From positions 1-64,000 of the forward strand of contig NW_002060943.1 in NCBI RefSeq assembly GCF_000150275.1: DNA of 64,000 bases, in the 5' to 3' direction. This document shows positions 55,881-64,000 of the stretch, one piece after another. The stretch's first letter is position 1. Each line of letters starts with the position of its first letter. The stretch comes from Trichoplax adhaerens. Lineage: Eukaryota > Animalia > Placozoa. Made by a program: the position numbers and the translations under genes. The notes under the pieces were generated by a model. That model was not told the origin of the DNA. It was given only the letters and a program-made list of their open reading frames with translations, and did not search any database.

Positions 55881-56069
55881 ATTGAATAACAAAATTCAAA
55901 ATTTTCACCCTATCCATTGTGGCTTGATCATTAGGAGTAGAGAATGTATGAATACTCAGCACTTGTAGAACGTCCAATTAAGCCATCGATTACTACTGCC
56001 TAGGCCGACATTGATTTCATTTTGAACTGTTGATCCTTGACATACTACTACTTCCTCAACTTTCGTTAC

Positions 56070-56423
56070 ATTTTATGCTGACTCTCAGTCATCAGCATTG
56101 ATATTTGATAATTTCAGGCATCCTACTACGATGTCGATTGATTTACTAGTTATTCAAAATTGAAATTGCACACAGTATTAGCTACCTTTTATGTACGTTG
56201 CTAGGTCTAGATACAGATAATCCTTGGTAGAAGAACTAGGATCACGACATTTTATGCTGACTCTCAGTCAGCAGCATTGATAAATGATAATTTCAGGCAT
56301 CGTACTACGATGTCGATTGATATACTAGCTATTCAAAATTCAAATTGAATACAGTATTAGCTACCTTTTACGTACGCTGCTACGTCTAGATACAGATCAT
56401 TCTTGGTAGAAGAACTAGGATCA
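56070..56423 (+). repeat. ~177-bp tandem duplication upstream of MT copy 1
   Basis: 'cattttatgctgactctcagtca...agaactaggatcac' occurs twice; only one unit in copy 2 (about 61895-62062). Confidence 0.85.
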
Positions 56424-56595
56424 CCAAGTAACTCATGTAATCAAGTTCAGTCAATCAAAAAAAATCAGAAAGATTTTTATTATAAGATAACAAAATAATC
56501 AGTTGGCGAGCCAGAGAAATTGTAGTTGAGTAGGTATGCATCCGTTCCGTAAAACACATTTTACAAATGATGAAAACATGTTTTCCAGAATTTTC

Positions 56596-57073
56596 GATCG
56601 CTTAGGGCTCTTCGCGACCGCAGTGCACTAAAACTGCAATATTAGTCATATTTTACGAAAATAAACAAAAGAGAATACAAAAATGACCAGTAAAATTAGG
56701 ATTGAGGAGACGAAGATCGCAAAGACTTGATGAAAGGCCGCAATGCACTTTCCAGATTTCGTTAGTCCTTTGCGAGCAAGAACGTTATAGTAAGCGATAC
56801 TATTGGATTAGGTGTCATATCATTTCCTAGAGTGAGGAGTACCGTATCGTACGTTCTTTTCGTTCAAATGCTCGCAAGGCATTGACAACTTCCGTTAACA
56901 CTTTGCGGTCGAGGATTACGGTAGTTTAATTATGATATCAGCCAAGAATCTATATGATGTCTTGTATTTGAATGGATTGTATGATACATTACTCAAGCTG
57001 TGCCAGCATTGATGAAGGCCGCAAAGCACTAAAGTTACAATTGGAAAGGATCAACATTCGATAGGTATAAATA
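56596..57073 (+). promoter_or_regulatory. MT copy 1 promoter: TATA box plus 8x GNYCGCA(A/G)(A/T/G)G motif
   Basis: TATAAATA 57066-57073; motifs at 56596 (degenerate), 56616, 56715, 56736, 56768(-), 56870, 56901(-), 57017. Confidence 0.65.
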
Positions 57074-57218
57074 GCCTTAGCATGACTGATTTTTTCTAAA
57101 TTCTTTTTCAGAGCAAAGAAGGCTAAAGGAAGTTGAAATACCTATCCAAGTTGGACCATTTACCTGGAATTTTGGATTTGGATATCATTTCGTCTAAACC
57201 TTATCAAGTCAGCGTATC

Positions 57219-60200
57219 ATGGATAGCTCGACAGATATACCTTGCAACTGTGTTGAAAGTAAGTACTAGACTGTATACCAGACATCTATAGGAATACTGC
57301 GTACGTCCAATGAATGCACTTGATCCGTACTACAGTAGTTTAACTTGGGTTATCAACGTTTTGCCAAGCACTTCACTCTCAAAAATTTGCCTAGTCACTC
57401 ATGGAGTCAATAGCTAGGATTTAATTTTTTAGACAAATTGTAGAAGAAAGAATACCAGCAATGCAGGGATCAATTCAACCAAATTGATCCGAATACAGTT
57501 GGATAACATGGGATAACCTATGCAGTAGAGTAAAAGAACGTTTTTTAGCAGTGATTGTGTATTATTTATTTTTTATTTTTTATTTTGAATAGTCGCACCT
57601 ACAGTACTATACCGTGGTCGCACCGACTGTACTGTACTGTACAGTACAGTGTACAGTACAATGCCGTACAGTAGTTTTTTTCGTACAGTTATTGCTAGTT
57701 ATTAGCATATTGTACTGTACACTGTACAGTACTGTACCATACCGTTCCTCACAGTACTATTGTCGAAAAAAAGTAATAATAATTAAATTTACGGTATAAA
57801 AAATCTTGATCGGTATACTGTACAGTACAGTACAGTACAGTAACAGTACATATTGTTACTGTTATACCGATCAAGATTTTTTATACAGTATACGTACAGA
57901 ATCCGACTGCGCACGCCCATTTCGATATTTGTGACGTCACGTTGCCCTGGACTACTGTACACTCAGTGTACAGTGTACAGTATCGACAATAACTACGGAC
58001 CGTTGATTCCTGCACGTGACTCGAGATAATGGCAGTTTTTACCGTTGTATTGTTTGTTTTTACATGTCGTACGAGGCTTATTACAAATTCAATTTCTACA
58101 TCTTCGTAGTAAACCTTGTAGTAAACGTTCGCGAGTGTTGCCTCTCAAAAGCTCGCAAGCTATTTAGTACTTTAGTAGTGCCTGCTGTAGCACATTCAAA
58201 AGGGGACAGTATTACTGTACAAAGGTTTTTAGCATTTCATTCTTTCTTCTTAAACTGTAGCTGGAATTTGCAAATGTAGTCCTGACTGCAAGTGCAGAAA
58301 CTGTCAATGCACATCAGACTGCAAATCATCCTGTGCAAAGAACTGCGACTGTTCTGGTTAGTTGAAACAAGTTCAATGAATACTCTACAGTCTACAGTCT
58401 ATAGTAAACTGTATTGCAGATCTCAGTTGACTGCGTTATATTCAATGTTTATGTTTAGCTGGCAATTGCAAATGCTGTTGTCATTGCGACTGTAGTAACT
58501 GTCAATGTACATCGTGCAGCAAATCAACCAGTGGAAAAACTTGCGACTGTTCAGGTCAGTTAATAAAAGCATATAACGTAAACACCATTTCTTAAACTAT
58601 ATCAGTTAAATAAATGTAATCACATAGTAATAATATCGCCCCTATCACGGTAATAGCGTATTAATTCGAATTGTTTCTGGTATTTTAATATTTAGACGAT
58701 AATTGCACATGCTGTTCTCAATGCAACTGCACGAGCTGTAAATGCACATCATGTACTAAGTCGTCGAATGAAAATACTTGCGACTGTTCAGGTAAGTTAA
58801 AACAAATTAAATAAATACCATTTCTTATAGATAGGACTTACAATAATAATAATTATAATCGAACCAATATAATCAGACATTACTCATTTCCTCACTTCCC
58901 TCCCTACCTTTTAGTAGTATTACATACTGTACGTACATATGCTATTTATATAATGTATTGATTTATTTGTTTGTGACTTTTACATTTAGCTTGCGATTGC
59001 AAAAACTGCTCTGATTGCAACTGTACTAGCTGTAAATGCACATCATGCAGCAAATCGTCGAGTGGAAACACTTGCGACTGCTCAGGTCAGTCAATAAAGA
59101 GTCAAATAAATAATATGCGCTACCTTAAAGAGATGTAATTTATTTATTATATCGAAAATACATCACAAGATATTACTCGTATTATCACTTTCCTATGCTT
59201 GTAGTAGCGTGTTAATTTTATCGTTTCTGGCCATTACATTTAGCTTGCGATTGCAAGAGCTGCTCTGATTGCAACTGTACTAGCTGTAAATGCACATCAT
59301 GCAGCAAATCGTCCAGTGGAAACACTTGCAACTGTTCAGGTCAGTTAATAAAGATGCAAATAAATAATATGCGCTACCTTGAAGAGATACACGTATAATT
59401 TATTTATTATATCGAAAATAGATCACTTGACATTGTTCGTATCGCCACTTTCCTAACCTTATAGTAGCGTATTAATTTTATCGTTTCTGCCTTTTACATT
59501 TAGTTTGCAATTGCAAAAGCTGCTCTGATTGTAACTGTACTAGCTGTAAATGTACATCATGCAGTACATCGTCGAGTAGAAATACTTGCGACTGCTCAGG
59601 TCAGTCAATAAAGAGTCAAACAAATAATATGCACTACCTTAAAGAGATATAATTTATTATTTTGAAAATACAACACCAGATATTACTCGTATCGTCACTT
59701 TCCTACCTGTTTAGTAGCATGTTAATTTCATCGTTTCTGACTTTTACATTTAGCTTGCAATTGCAAAAGTTGTTCTGATTGTAACTGTACTAGCTGTAAA
59801 TGCACATCATGCAGCAAATTGCCGAGCGGAAACAGTTGCGACTGTTCAGGTTAGCTAATGAGAAGTAAAATGAGTATTATGGCGTACTTTTAAAGAGATA
59901 GAAGTTACTGTAATCGATTGAAATATAATCAGATATTATTCATGTCGTCACTTTCCTATCCATGTAGTAGTGTGCGTACGTATTGATTTCATTAAATCTG
60001 GTTTTACATTTAGCGGGTAATTGCAAATGCTGTTCCGACTGTCAATGCACCAGCTGTACATGTACATCATGTAGCAAATCACCAAGTGAAAAGAATTGCA
60101 ACTGTTCAGGTCAGTTAAAAACGAGTTGAAGGAGGATTATTCCTTAGAGATATAATTTATATGACAATGTAATCAAACATTACTAGTATCATCATTTTAC

Positions 60201-60826
60201 CATTCGCTGTAGTAATTTATTAATTTAATTGTTTCTGGCTTTTGCATTAGCTGGAAATTGTAAGTGCTGTTGTGACTGTGACTGCACTAGCTGTCAATGT
60301 ACGTCATGCAGCAAATCTTCAAGTGGAAAAACTTGCGACTGTTCAGGTCAGTTAAAACAAGTTAAAATAACACTATTGCTTAAAGATATAATTTATACTC
60401 GAATAAACGTAATCAGACATTACTAGTGTCGTCAATCTACGATTCCTATTGCAGTGTATTAATGTAATTGTTTCTGGCTTTTACATTAGCTTGCAATTGC
60501 AAATGCTGTTCGGACTGCGATTGTGCTAGCTGTAAATGTACATCATGCAGCAAATCACCAAGTAAAAAAACTTGCGACTGTTCAGGTCAGTTAAAAACGA
60601 GTTAAATGAATATATATGTCTTAAAGATATTTATTTATCTTCATTTTATTATAATTGAATAAAATGGGATCAGACATTATCCGGACCTTCGCTTTCCTAA
60701 TTTTTTATTAGCATATTGATATCATTGTTTCTGTCTTTACATTTAGCTGCCAATTGCAAATGCTGTTCTGATTGTGACTGCACTAGCTGTGAATGTACGC
60801 TATGTAGTAAATCATCGAATGAATAG
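57219..60826 (+). CDS. MT: giant multi-domain metallothionein-like protein (359 aa, 113 Cys, 11 beta-like domains)
   Basis: join(57219-57258, 58261-58356, 58459-58554, 58696-58791, 58990-59085, 59244-59339, 59504-59599, 59754-59849, 60014-60109, 60251-60346, 60490-60585, 60747-60826). All introns are GT-AG phase 1 and the frame is open to TAG 60824-60826. Protein: MDSSTDIPCNCVETGICKCSPDCKCRNCQCTSDCKSSCAKNCDCSAGNCKCCCHCDCSNCQCTSCSKST...CECTLCSKSSNE*. No Phe/Trp/Tyr. Confidence 0.88.
57590..57985. repeat. mixed CAGTA/CTGTA pentamer cluster in MT intron 1
   Basis: Runs such as actgtactgtactgtacagtacagtgtacagtac and ctgtacagtacagtacagtacagta. Confidence 0.85.
57908..57939 (+). promoter_or_regulatory. 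intronic MRE core (TGCGCAC) and CRE (TGACGTCA)
   Basis: TGCGCAC 57908-57914 fits TGCRCNC; GTGACGTCAC palindrome at 57931-57940. Confidence 0.4.
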
Positions 60827-60840
60827 ACTTGCGACTAGGT
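58261..60840 (+). repeat. tandem array of 11 exon(96 nt)+intron units, period about 200-295 bp
   Basis: Introns are mutually homologous (gtcagttaataaag...tcgtttctgg..ttacatttag). Confidence 0.9.
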
Positions 60841-61226
60841 TAGTTAAAACAAATTTAAATTACTTCTGTATTGTAATAAAACAAATGTGCATAGCATTAT
60901 CTAATCACAACTTGTGGAATTTACGCTTTAAACTCTATTCTCTATCAATCATCACAGGAGATGCAACCAGCTATAATTATGAGAAATAAGAGTGTGTCAA
61001 CCATAGCCGTTCAAAAGGATGCAGGAAGTTAATTTGCCGTAGCTTTTACAATGAAACCTTCATCGTTTACATGGGTACCTACTATCAATTGTTTACCGCT
61101 TATCTATAATAATTACATTCTAAAATATCTTGTTTAAACATTAAAATCATAACAACAGACAGTTTGATGATTCGGACACATACTCAAATTACAATTACTG
61201 CACCAATACGCTATGCTAAGAAAATC

Positions 61227-61232
61227 AATAAA
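61227..61232 (+). promoter_or_regulatory. candidate MT polyadenylation signal
   Basis: AATAAA about 400 nt after the stop, downstream of a likely 3' exon starting at 60958. Confidence 0.4.
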
Positions 61233-62230
61233 ACTATAATTTTAAATCTATCTTGTGGAAGTGTTACTAAAGAGTACAATACTAATTTATCTATCGCTAC
61301 TAGCGATAACTAAAATTTCTATCGCATTTTAATCATAACTACGTAAAAGGGTAATTAATAGCTACTTTACATCAAACAGTATCGTGCAGTTTAAATCGAG
61401 CCTATTATAATTAGGTGCCAAAGGTAAAAATAATGTTGTAGTTTCTAAATCTTTACAGATTTCCAATAATTAATTAGCAATTGAAAACCACTTCTATCAA
61501 CGTAGTGGCGTATAAGACTCATTCAAGTGATTTCGTACATTCACGAAAACATCAGCAAAACTAGAATCAACACAAATGCTTGAACGAGAAAATAGTACTA
61601 GCAGTCTAGTTGTAAACGTACGGTACCTTTACGCTATGAAAATTGTACTGTATGTACGATGATAGTTTATGTAGACGCATTGGTTATCTAACTGTTCTGC
61701 TGTATGGTAAAGTTCAAAATTTTCACCCTATCATTCATGGCTTCATCATCAGGAATAGAGAATGCATGATATTTAGCACTTGCAGAACGTACAGTACTAC
61801 AACCAAGGATGACTAAGTCCTAAACCGACATTTACTTATTTTTAAGGTTAATCCTTGCTATACTACTGTTGCTTGCTCAGCTTTCGTTGAGATATTTTAT
61901 ACCGACTGACAGTCAGCATTGATAATGATAATTTCAGGCATCGTACTACGATGACGATAGATATACTAGTTATTCAAATAAAATGGAATACAGTATTAGC
62001 TACCTTTTATGTACGTTGCTAGATCTAGATGCAGATAATCCTTGGTAGAAGAACTAGGATCACCAAGTAACTCATGTAATCAAGTTCAGTCAATCCAAAG
62101 AATTCGGCAGTTTATTATAATGAAATGATTCAATTTTCAAGTCATGGGCTAGAGAAATTGTAGTTGAGTAGTCATCCGTTTTGTAAAACACGTTTTTACA
62201 AATGATGAAAACATGTTTTCCAGAATTTTC

Positions 62231-62708
62231 GATCGCAAAGGACTCTTTACGACCGCAGTGCACTAAAACTGCAATATTAGTCACATTTTACTAAAATAAA
62301 CAAAAGAGAATACAAAAATGACCAGTAAAATTAGGATTGAGGAGACGAAGATCGCAAAGACTTGCTGAAAGGCCGCAATGCACTTTCCTGATTTCGTTAG
62401 TCCTTTGCGAGCAAGGACGCTATAGTAAACGATACTATTGGCGAAGATGGTGTATTATTTCCTAGAGTGAGGAGTACCGTATCGTATATTGCTACAAGTT
62501 GAAATGCTCGCAAGGCATTGACAACCTTCGTTAGTACTTTGCGGTGGATGATCACCGTACTAAACAAGGATGTCAGCCAAGATTCTATATGATGTCTTGT
62601 ATTTGAATGGATTGTATGGGACATTACTCAAGCTGATGCAGCTTTAATGAAGACCGCAAAGCACTAAAGTTACAATTGGAAAGGATCAACATTCGATAGG
62701 TATAAATA
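62231..62708 (+). promoter_or_regulatory. MT copy 2 promoter: TATA box plus conserved YCGCA motif cluster
   Basis: TATAAATA 62701-62708; motifs at 62231, 62251, 62350, 62371, 62403(-), 62506, 62537(-), 62652. Confidence 0.65.
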
Positions 62709-62855
62709 GCCTTAGCATGACTGATTTTTTCTAAATTCTTTTCCGAAGCGAGGAAGGCTAAAGGAAGTTGAAATACCTATCCAAGTTGGACCCTTTACCT
62801 GTTGAATTTTTGATTTAGATATCATTTCGTCTAAACCTTATCAAGTCAGCGTATC

Positions 62856-64000
62856 ATGGATAGCTTAACAGATAGACCTTGCAACTATGTTGAAAGTAAG
62901 TACTAGACTGTACAGTATATAGTGCATCAGATGTTTACAGGAATACACCGTACGCCTTGATTGGTACTACCAGTTGAATTTTGCTTAATAATCAATGTTC
63001 AACGTCTTGGCACTGAAAAATTTGCCTAGCCACCCATGTAATCAACGGCTACAATCAGACCTTTTAGATAAATTAAGAAAAAAGAATACCAATAATTGAG
63101 GTGCCAATGCAGTTGAATAACATAGAATGACCAATACACTACACTGTATGTCCAGTTAGAATGCCCTTGATCCGTACTACAGTAGTTTAACTTGGGTTAT
63201 CAACGTTTGCGGCTTCGCACTCCAAATTTATCTAGTCACTCATGGAATCAATGGCTAGAATCAGACCTTTTAGACAATTTATGAAAAAAGAATACCAGCA
63301 ATGCAGGGATCAATTGAATCGAATTGATCCGAACACAGCTCAATAACATTGAATGACGGACCAATGCAGTAAAGTAAAAAGTCGTTTATACAAGTGATTG
63401 TGCGCTATTATTTTTTGGATTTATTTTTAGTAGTCACACCGACTGTACAGTGTACAGTACAGTACACTGTACTGTACTGTACGCTGAGTATACAGTACAG
63501 TACACTGTACGCTGAGTGTACAGTACAGTACGGTAGTGTACAGCAATATTATTTTCCTATAAGATATTTGAATAAAAGTAGAAATAAAATGTATTACTAG
63601 ATGTCGGTATGAATTACTGCATTAGCCCGTTAGTTTTAGTTAGTTATACAGTACAGTATCCAAAACGAAATGTACTGTACACCGTGTGCAGTGTACAGTT
63701 ATTACCGTATACTGTCTGTACTGTAGCACTATAGCAAAAAAAATAAATAAACAAATCAATCAAAAATCGGGATGGGTACAGACAGTCATGCGGACAATCT
63801 AACTGCGCATGTCCAATATCCAATTTGTGACGTACACTCCTACAGTACTCACTGGAGACCCTCTACAGTATGATGAAGGGTCGCTAGTACTCACCGCGCA
63901 ATCAAAATGGGATGCTGTTACAACAGAATTTTTGACATTTCATTCTTTCTTCTTAAACTATAGCTGGAATTTGCAAATGTAGTCCTGACTGCAAGTGCAG
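62856..64000 (+). CDS. MT: metallothionein-like paralog 2 (5' part; runs off window)
   Basis: Exon 1 62856-62895 MDSLTDRPCNYVE|gtaagt; exon 2 from 63964 (T)GICKCSPDCKC..., identical to copy 1 exon 2 over the visible part. Confidence 0.8.
63430..63870. repeat. CAGTA/CTGTA pentamer cluster in intron 1 of MT copy 2
   Basis: Dense tactgtac/gtacagta runs, arranged differently from copy 1; includes a minus-strand TGCACACGG MRE at 63682-63690. Confidence 0.8.

Follow-up and report, generated by a model that had tools for sequence, protein, structure and literature searches.

We found that the first 64,000 nucleotides of a Trichoplax adhaerens contig (NW_002060943.1; hereafter the window) carry a transcribed and spliced gene that very probably encodes a cytosolic, multi-modular and presumably metal-binding metallothionein (MT) of this placozoan. 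The gene has eleven cysteine-rich modules, is followed by a larger tandem paralogue (gene B), and belongs, as an initial annotation had supposed, to an early-branching animal.

Gene structure and transcription

The 12 exons of the gene (57219-60826, + strand; Table 1) are separated throughout by introns with canonical GT..AG ends and pyrimidine-rich acceptors, and the joined coding sequence of 1080 nt translates into 359 amino acids. The ten internal exons have a uniform length of 96 nt, enter and leave in phase 1, and each carry most of one domain, an 8-residue Ser-rich linker and the opening CxC of the domain that follows. Exon and intron together form a tandem repeat of 240-260 nt that TRF places at 58956-60836. 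The exon-intron tandem amplification proposed in the initial annotation stands, and the joined coding sequence bears out its clean 12-exon splicing into a product with 113 Cys and without Phe, Trp or Tyr. The annotation had also remarked that the ORF track catches one exon, and in the mechanical ORF list exon 10 alone is indeed in frame (ORF 60229..60426). Exon 12 is directly followed by remnants of a module tail and of a gttagt donor (60827-60848), which gene B has kept as well, and this indicates that the last exon is a truncated internal module. The 5' UTR contains no ATG upstream of the start codon. Sequencing depth over the (TACAG)n element of intron 1 is very high in every run, marking this element as a genome-wide repeat.

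Table 1. Features of the 11-module gene and its surroundings, in window positions.
Feature	Position	Strand	Basis or remark
Promoter region, CTTTGCG candidate cis-regulatory element	56718..57026	.	4 copies
TATAAATA box	57066..57073	+	sequence read; ~31 nt before first RNA-contig base (57104); conserved in gene B
5' UTR (approximate start)	57104..57218	+	RNA-seq run X11 contig (record 9)
Exon 1	57219..57258	+	start codon, 13 codons + 1 base; codes first CxC
Intron 1	57259..58260	+	1002 nt; (TACAG)n / inverted-repeat element at ~57600-57990
Exon 2	58261..58356	+	remainder of N-terminal domain (10 Cys in exon) and first CxC of domain 2
Exon 3, module 2	58459..58554	+	splice model; RNA contig at exon 2/3 junction
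Exon 4, module 3	58696..58791	+	splice model; RNA contig
Exon 5, module 4 (Cys-shifted variant)	58990..59085	+	splice model, module comparison
Exon 6, module 5	59244..59339	+	splice model, module comparison
Exon 7, module 6	59504..59599	+	splice model, module comparison
Exon 8, module 7	59754..59849	+	splice model, module comparison
Exon 9, module 8	60014..60109	+	splice model, module comparison; within DNA-like contig 59738-60345
Exon 10, module 9	60251..60346	+	splice model; in-frame ORF
Exon 11, module 10	60490..60585	+	splice model, module comparison
Exon 12, module 11	60747..60826	+	TAG stop inside linker
3' UTR (end not fixed)	60827..61034	+	RNA contigs reach 61034; AATAAA at 60875
Start of tandem paralogue gene B	62234..64000	+	five CTTTGCG sites; exon 1 62856-62895; exon 2 from 63964; runs past window end

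The 11-module gene is transcribed. In RNA-seq run X11, coverage is limited to 57082-61092 and drops to zero on either side (zero from 61093). One X11 contig (record 9) matches 57104-57258 with 0 differences, its alignment stopping exactly at the exon 1 donor (57258), and it is specific to the 11-module gene, since gene B differs there by 12 mismatches and 2 gaps. Two further X11 contigs also align with 0 differences, one at 58694-58789 (record 12), where gene B differs at 2 sites, and one at 60956-61034 (record 15), again specific to the 11-module gene; those of records 13 and 14 in the 3' region carry gene B's differences. Splicing was read directly in a contig (record 10) whose alignment passes from 58355 to 58458, the exon 2/3 junction, and as exons 2 and 3 are identical in gene B, this junction is not assignable between the two genes. 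The RNA-seq check called for in the initial annotation thus yielded transcription and the exon 2/3 join, one of 11 junctions and ambiguous with gene B; the (TACAG)n repeat swamped the junction listing, and junctions 3 to 11 are predicted.

The assembly is matched colinearly by contigs from independent runs over 58233-58557, 58540-59003, 59738-60345 (DNA-like, run X1, record 5) and 60651-61034. Among the contigs listed, none spans 59003-59738, and the count of the near-identical modules 4-6 therefore depends on the assembly itself. We consider it unlikely that the draft assembly, by mixing reads of two near-identical tandem arrays, partly distorted the module number (11) or the sequence of exons 2-6 in an otherwise real gene. 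The uncovered stretch would suit such an error, as would the 13-17 extra letters in the DNA-like contigs on 58540-59003 and the 98-100% identity of the two genes from exon 2 to intron 5, compared with ~90% in the flanks; however, gene conversion accounts equally well for the identical tract, the flanks, exon 1, intron 1 and distal modules clearly differ between the two genes, and the colinear contigs come from independent runs.

Cysteine modules, selection and paralogues

We next describe the protein. It contains 113 Cys (31.5%), 79 Ser, 33 Thr and 33 Lys, with Ser and Thr together at 31%, 0 Phe, Trp or Tyr and 1 His. Its Cys residues form 47 CxC, 38 CxxC and 8 CC motifs, and their content lies within the operational range of metallothioneins (~15-35% in such motifs), a class that also has no or very few aromatics and His, as is the case here. 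The apo-protein mass of 36.8 kDa is above the ~10 kDa MT criterion. Across the entire protein there are 7 residues of I, L, V or M, and the N-terminus is polar; no signal peptide or membrane span is therefore possible, consistent with the intracellular location, judged from composition, that is expected of a metallothionein.

Each domain holds 10-11 Cys, compared with 9 in the canonical beta domain. The N-terminal unit follows the mammalian pattern [CxC]x5[CxC]x3[CxC]x2[CxC]x2C exactly up to its eighth Cys, and then continues with x3 and one more Cys. At their ends the repeat units share the local CxC-T-S-C and basic/Ser tail of mammalian beta domains, from which they differ by x4 and CxCC. 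Against this layout, the initial annotation had quoted the N-terminal spacing correctly as CxC-x5-CxC-x3-CxC-x2-CxC-x3-C, omitting one further Cys (10 in total) before the next CxC, and its later-unit spacing, CxC-x4-CxCC-x2-CxC-x2-CxC-x2-C or a Cys-shifted variant, was right. Its reading of the composition and motifs as MT-like stands, and its label 'beta-only' is approximate with regard to the Cys number, the x4 and CxCC of the repeat units and the weak beta similarity: a module profile searched against the PDB matched mammalian MT beta domains alone (1dft, 2mhu), at E values of 0.46 and 0.76, which are not significant.

Elsewhere, ten exon peptides, each part of a domain, gave no Pfam match with E as high as 10, and so none to the vertebrate/mollusc-type MT family PF00131. 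Among named clusters of the protein atlas, metallothioneins came nearest, with scores of 0.81-0.86 that serve as leads only. A HMMER search of the module profile against 1.84 billion representatives returned 0 matches and no self match; the product is absent from the set or was removed by composition filters, so this zero is uninformative on novelty. The ORF around exon 10 gave no candidates in a homologous-protein search whose length range excluded long proteins, and a search for contigs encoding it had nothing on record.

The modules are under strong purifying selection. Among them pS is 0.53 and pN 0.12, and dN/dS ranges from 0.07 to 0.22. Across the 10 repeat units, mean nucleotide identity is 81% in exons and 69% in introns, the variable sites at codon positions 1, 2 and 3 number 10, 13 and 22, and 7 of the 9 conserved Cys columns contain both TGC and TGT; in pS/pN and in mixed Cys codons the pattern is far beyond chance. 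None of the 12 exons has a frameshift or a lost splice site, and no conserved Cys is lost. On these values it is highly unlikely that the array is a transcribed but decaying duplicate that drifts neutrally beside the small MT and/or gene B as the working genes: the truncated last module, with its stop in the linker and vestigial donor, would fit decay, but it is gene B that has lost a Cys in exon 1 and carries Tyr insertions in modules and at least one off-length exon.

When comparing the gene with its relatives in the same genome, we observe paralogy both to a small MT and to gene B. The small MT (C1414, about 1.3336-1.3354 Mb) has 3 exons, 65 aa and 19 Cys. Exons 1 and 2 of the 11-module gene agree with it in exon size (exon 2 = 96 nt), phase and Cys layout, exon 1 ending in both genes in phase 1 after the first CxC and 2 residues; the small gene differs in having no repeated middle exon. 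In a direct pairwise comparison the two second exons share 39% ungapped identity with 9 of 10 Cys aligned (E 4e-6), and neither a genome search with the small-MT exon 2 nor the reverse search detected the other paralogue. Multi-modular metallothioneins are defined by tandem repeats related to the lineage's own small MT, and the paralogy of exons 1-2 provides this relation. Gene B begins 2 kb downstream, has about 26-28 exons with ~28 modules, and shares its promoter, exons, 3' UTR and module type with the 11-module gene, while its intron 1 is 65% like intron 1 of the latter. Together these two genes account for all 38 module exons of the genome. The unit tree pairs A2-B2, A3-B3, A4-B4, A5-B5, A10-B25 and A11-B26 with full support, and the common ancestor of both large genes was therefore already multi-modular.

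That the product is instead a Cys-rich repeat protein with a non-sequestration role, such as redox buffering by thiols or a structural function as a cross-linked protein, and MT-like in composition alone, is quite unlikely. Its clear paralogy to an MT of classic size, the MT-type CxC/CxxC spacing kept invariant under selection, the near absence of hydrophobic residues together with that of a signal peptide, and the restriction of PDB matches to MT beta domains all speak against such a role, for which the very high Ser/Thr content, the missing Pfam match, the weak similarity to MT domains and the lack of a canonical MRE (below) could be cited.

Candidate promoter elements and proposed origin

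Copies of CTTTGCG precede the 11-module gene at 56718-56724 (minus), 56768-56774 (plus), 56901-56907 (plus) and 57020-57026 (minus). Of 10 matches in the window, 9 precede the two MT genes, with 3.95 expected across the whole window, and the small MT has 2 copies at most 210 nt from its ATG. The element, with the extended form agtN-CTTTGCG-Rtc, thus clusters in the promoters of all three MT genes. Furthermore, no canonical MRE core (TGCRCNC), the site through which MT genes are typically metal-induced, occurs within 600 nt upstream of the 11-module gene or gene B, and MRE core counts across the window are not above chance.

As for its origin, the gene probably arose from a small 3-exon metallothionein gene, in which a hybrid middle exon, with the same intron copied on both flanks, would have been amplified by unequal crossing-over until there were ten symmetric exons of 96 nt and phase 1-1; how exactly the first module came about is a matter of reconstruction. 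The protein can be pictured as a flexible string of eleven thiolate-cluster beads with 10-11 Cys apiece. Every bead probably holds 3-4 divalent ions, which would amount to ~33-44 Zn/Cd per protein, or more Cu(I), where the initial annotation had predicted about 30 or more divalent ions, and the protein would serve to buffer or detoxify metals at high capacity. Both this predicted load of 33-44 divalent ions and the candidate regulatory motif are testable at the locus.

The evolution of metallothioneins is notoriously difficult to reconstruct, and to our knowledge the MTs of non-bilaterian animals are barely described. In mammalian MT genes, a phase-1 intron lies two residues beyond the first CxC. 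A broader reading, tentative and rather doubtful as a whole, is that the placozoan founding domain shares its Cys spacing and phase-1 intron position with vertebrate and mollusc beta domains. In that case the beta-type metallothioneins would all belong to one ancient metazoan family instead of having been invented repeatedly, metal capacity would be tunable through symmetric exons by unequal crossing-over (11 versus ~28 modules in neighbours) and possibly by in-frame exon skipping, and all three MT genes would be driven by CTTTGCG, an element other than the MRE. The small 3-exon MT, the 11-module gene and the ~28-module gene form a natural series in one genome, with orthologous modules still recognisable between the large genes, and this series shows how giant metal-binding proteins are built up stepwise through exon-intron amplification and gene conversion.

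Comparison with known multi-modular metallothioneins

Giant metallothioneins are known in tunicates, snails and fungi, and no paper on placozoan MTs was found in the literature searched. The initial annotation had called the product far larger than 60-aa MTs, which holds at 359 aa, although such a size is not unprecedented, given BscMT1, OdiMT2 and the larger next gene in this genome. BscMT1 of the styelid ascidian Botryllus schlosseri has 365 aa, 105 Cys and nine 12-Cys repeats and binds 36 Zn, its metal capacity scaling with the number of domains, which derive from the lineage's small MT (PMC8476144). The Trichoplax protein comes close to it in size and Cys load (359 aa, 113 Cys) and likewise consists of tandem repeats of one small-MT domain; it belongs to another phylum and is known from gene and sequence, whereas metal binding has been shown for BscMT1. 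The ascidian domain, [CxC]x5[CxC]x2Cx2Cx2[CxC]x4[CxC]x3-6CC, ends in a CC doublet. We rejected this 12-Cys domain as a match for the placozoan modules, whose pattern departs after the second CxC and lacks the terminal doublet (compared with Table 1 of PMC8476144).

OdiMT2 of Oikopleura dioica (399 aa, 123 Cys) is a giant MT that arose by internal tandem duplication, with some repeats containing introns and a repeat number that varies between populations through recombination (PMC8283569). It resembles the 11-module gene in this mode of origin and differs in its unrelated Cys pattern (Cx3Cx2Cx2...), in a repeat unit made of a trimmed and a full domain, and in not keeping one exon per module throughout. 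Despite the <10 kDa criterion, such large multi-modular MTs count as metallothioneins in the field (PMC8476144), and as they are already documented, the general picture is unchanged. The gastropod Alinda biplicata has MTs of 9 and 10 domains encoded by intronless genes (PMC7084494); these too repeat many short domains in one chain, close in number to the 11 found here, but they belong to another lineage, and each Trichoplax module has its own symmetric exon. Overall, what is new in the placozoan gene is the animal lineage and the one-module-per-exon design.

Exon structure and transcription of gene A

We read 56800-61200 directly and then scanned it for phase-1 exons, recovering the 12 exons of gene A, the eleven-module metallothionein (MT) gene. 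All of its introns are GT..AG, each of the ten internal exons is 96 nt long in phase 1-1, and in-silico splicing yields 1080 nt and a 359-aa protein with 113 Cys (31.5%), 79 Ser, 33 Thr, 33 Lys, 1 His and no Phe, Trp or Tyr; the description given in the initial annotation is correct. Its remark that a single exon is caught in frame agrees with the ORF listing, in which only exon 10 appears, and TRF detects a repeat of 240-260 nt made up of one exon and its intron, in line with the exon-intron tandem amplification it proposed. When domains are bounded from the CxC at one exon's end to the last Cys ahead of the Ser-rich linker, all 11 contain 10 or 11 Cys (113 in total); the nine Cys earlier listed for the N-terminal unit are present, but the unit holds one more (10 in all). 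Exon 12 is a truncated module with TAG within the linker, and after the stop (60827-60848) lie a vestigial T-C-D module tail and a vestigial gttagt donor, a remnant also kept by gene B, the larger tandem paralogue downstream; this tail and donor show that the last exon is a former internal module. The first ATG on the transcript is at 57219.

Coordinates of exons and upstream elements (gene A exons from the phase-1 exon scan; L017 is the locus stretch holding the small MT gene)
Feature	Position	Strand	Remark
Gene A exon 1	57219-57258	+	
Gene A exon 2	58261-58356	+	
Gene A exon 3	58459-58554	+	
Gene A exon 4	58696-58791	+	
Gene A exon 5	58990-59085	+	
Gene A exon 6	59244-59339	+	
Gene A exon 7	59504-59599	+	
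Gene A exon 8	59754-59849	+	
Gene A exon 9	60014-60109	+	
Gene A exon 10	60251-60346	+	
Gene A exon 11	60490-60585	+	
Gene A exon 12	60747-60826	+	
TATAAATA box	57066-57073		~31 nt ahead of RNA contig start
Small MT exon 1	L017 2094-2121		28 nt, phase 1
Small MT exon 2	L017 3399-3494		96 nt
Small MT exon 3	L017 3863-3936		
CTTTGCG cluster, gene A	56718-57026		
CTTTGCG cluster, gene B	62234-62661		
CTTTGCG cluster, small MT	L017 1887-2075		

Among the sequencing runs aligned to gene A, X11 is a declared RNA-seq library, and X1, X4 and X6 are DNA-like, with coverage that extends over introns and flanks. X11 has positive depth between 57082 and 61092 and none on either side. Record 9 of X11 (57104-57258) aligns with no mismatch and ends exactly at the exon 1 donor; gene B differs over this region by 12 bases and 2 gaps, and the record is therefore specific to gene A, as are records 12 (exon 4) and 15 (3' UTR, to 61034). 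Record 10 joins 58355 to 58458, the exon 2/3 junction, and since the two genes show 100% identity over exons 2 and 3, it proves splicing of the design in a gene that cannot be assigned. Records 13 and 14 bear gene B's differences, so that, together with the gene A-specific contigs, both genes are expressed. RNA-seq, which the initial annotation had named as a check on the junctions, shows the exon 2/3 junction in one or other of the two genes, and a contig of gene A ending at the exon 1 donor; the other nine junctions are predicted only, the read-joint listing being dominated by the (TACAG)n element of intron 1.

Intron 1 of gene A (57600-57990) and that of gene B (63458-63543) both contain microsatellite blocks of (TACAG)n/(TACTG)n in which inverted repeats are nested; in gene A these include a 28-nt pair that is 96% complementary (57790-57817 and 57863-57890). 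Sequencing depth over the (TACAG)n block exceeds that of adjacent sequence by a factor of hundreds in all runs, indicating that the repeat is very abundant genome-wide. Upstream, window positions 1-56000, the start of a 13-Mb scaffold, are gene-poor, with 30% GC and five N gaps, and contain no ORF of at least 85 aa outside N runs; one such ORF lies at 58016-58279, in intron 1 of gene A. A 179-nt unit in two tandem copies, 92% alike, occupies 56068-56424, ~0.8 kb upstream of the gene A start codon, and the part from 56246 is shared with the region upstream of gene B.

Probable metallothionein identity and selection on the modules

The reading of gene A as a metallothionein, already put forward in the initial annotation, is supported in substance by MT-type composition and motifs, by paralogy with a classic-sized MT of the same genome (small MT) and by a module profile that matched 2 of 177,635 PDB sequences, both mammalian MT beta domains. 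The nearest named protein-atlas clusters are metallothioneins (0.81-0.86), a lead only. Against this reading stand the E-values of the two PDB matches (0.46 and 0.76), which are not significant, and a Pfam search of the gene A peptides, exon by exon, that gave no match. The gene A domains depart from the ascidian 12-Cys pattern, which was rejected. Mammalian MT genes carry a phase-1 intron two residues after the first CxC, the position of intron 1 in gene A. Secretion, named earlier as the contrary case, is opposed by the chain itself, in which I, L, V and M together account for only 7 residues, making a signal peptide impossible. By analogy with BscMT1, whose nine 12-Cys domains bind 36 Zn (PMC8476144), the eleven gene A domains, of 10-11 Cys each, should bind ~33-44 divalent ions.

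Upon comparing the ten 96-nt exons of gene A, we found mean differences per site of 0.53 synonymous and 0.12 non-synonymous, with dN/dS of 0.07-0.22 between neighbouring modules and 10, 13 and 22 variable sites at codon positions 1, 2 and 3, respectively. Similarity among exons 3-11 is 81%, against 69% for their introns. Both TGC and TGT are used in 7 of the 9 conserved Cys columns, indicating that selection keeps the amino acid and not the DNA.

Paralogues, proposed array origin and a candidate element

A six-frame search of the assembly (105,631,681 bases, 1414 contigs) with one module found 38 module exons, every one in gene A or gene B. Gene B, followed from window 62234-64000, starts with exon 1 at 62856, reaches ~70853 of the same contig (C1414) and comprises about 26-28 module exons. 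One Cys is lost in its exon 1 (CxC to CxY), Tyr-Tyr occurs in several modules, two exons depart from 96 nt (102 nt in one and, near 69075, apparently 97 nt in another), and the terminal exon ends in TAA, earlier than the stop of gene A. Between the two genes, the 5' flank is 91% and exon 1 90% identical and intron 1 has diverged, whereas exon 2 through intron 5 is 98-100% identical, introns included, with ~85% beyond. This ~1.1-kb tract (window 58215-59340 versus C1414:63915-65060), set between flanks only ~90% alike, looks like recent gene conversion, the simplest reading of the alignment. Identity is 90.6% between the 3' end blocks (60714-61343 and 70741-71377) and, as judged from the alignment, seems to be greater still within the 3' UTR. 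In a tree of exon+intron units, A2-B2, A3-B3, A4-B4, A5-B5, A10-B25 and A11-B26 pair with full support and B7-B24 form B-only clusters; the ancestor of both genes was therefore already multi-modular, and gene B expanded further.

Small MT lies 1.27 Mb from gene A and encodes a 65-aa product containing 19 Cys. Its exon 2 and exon 2 of gene A can be aligned without gaps (39% identity, 9 of 10 Cys aligned, E 4e-6), and exon 3 of small MT is similar to the initial half of the repeat module. The seed exon may have been a hybrid, with an exon-3-like head joined to an exon-2-like tail, flanked on either side by copies of intron 2, and unequal crossing-over between these intron copies would have amplified it. 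The symmetry of every module exon (phase 1-1, 96 nt) means that gain, loss or skipping of modules preserves the reading frame.

No canonical MRE was found within 600 nt upstream of gene A, which counts against the metallothionein reading. Across the 64-kb window there are 10 sites for the heptamer CTTTGCG (3.95 expected); 9 of them lie within ~620 nt upstream of the gene A and gene B ATGs, and the heptamer is almost missing from the remainder. Small MT has two copies within 210 nt of its ATG, the only independent support for the motif, because the gene A and gene B sites are shared by descent. The motif, extended as agtN-CTTTGCG-Rtc, coincides in part with the 5' half of the vertebrate MRE consensus but lacks the invariant C, and is a candidate for an element specific to MT genes or to the placozoan metal response.

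Comparison with known multi-modular metallothioneins

Multi-modular MTs are known from styelid ascidians (BscMT1, 365 aa, 105 Cys; PMC8476144), from Oikopleura (OdiMT2, 399 aa, 123 Cys, the number of repeats differing among populations; PMC8283569) and from snails (Alinda, 9-10 domains, intronless genes; PMC7084494), and are documented also in fungi and ciliates. Gene A belongs with these in both kind and size. What is new is the lineage, as our literature search found no placozoan MT paper, together with the type of domain, the strict allotment of one exon to each module and the three-step series of small MT, gene A and gene B within one genome.
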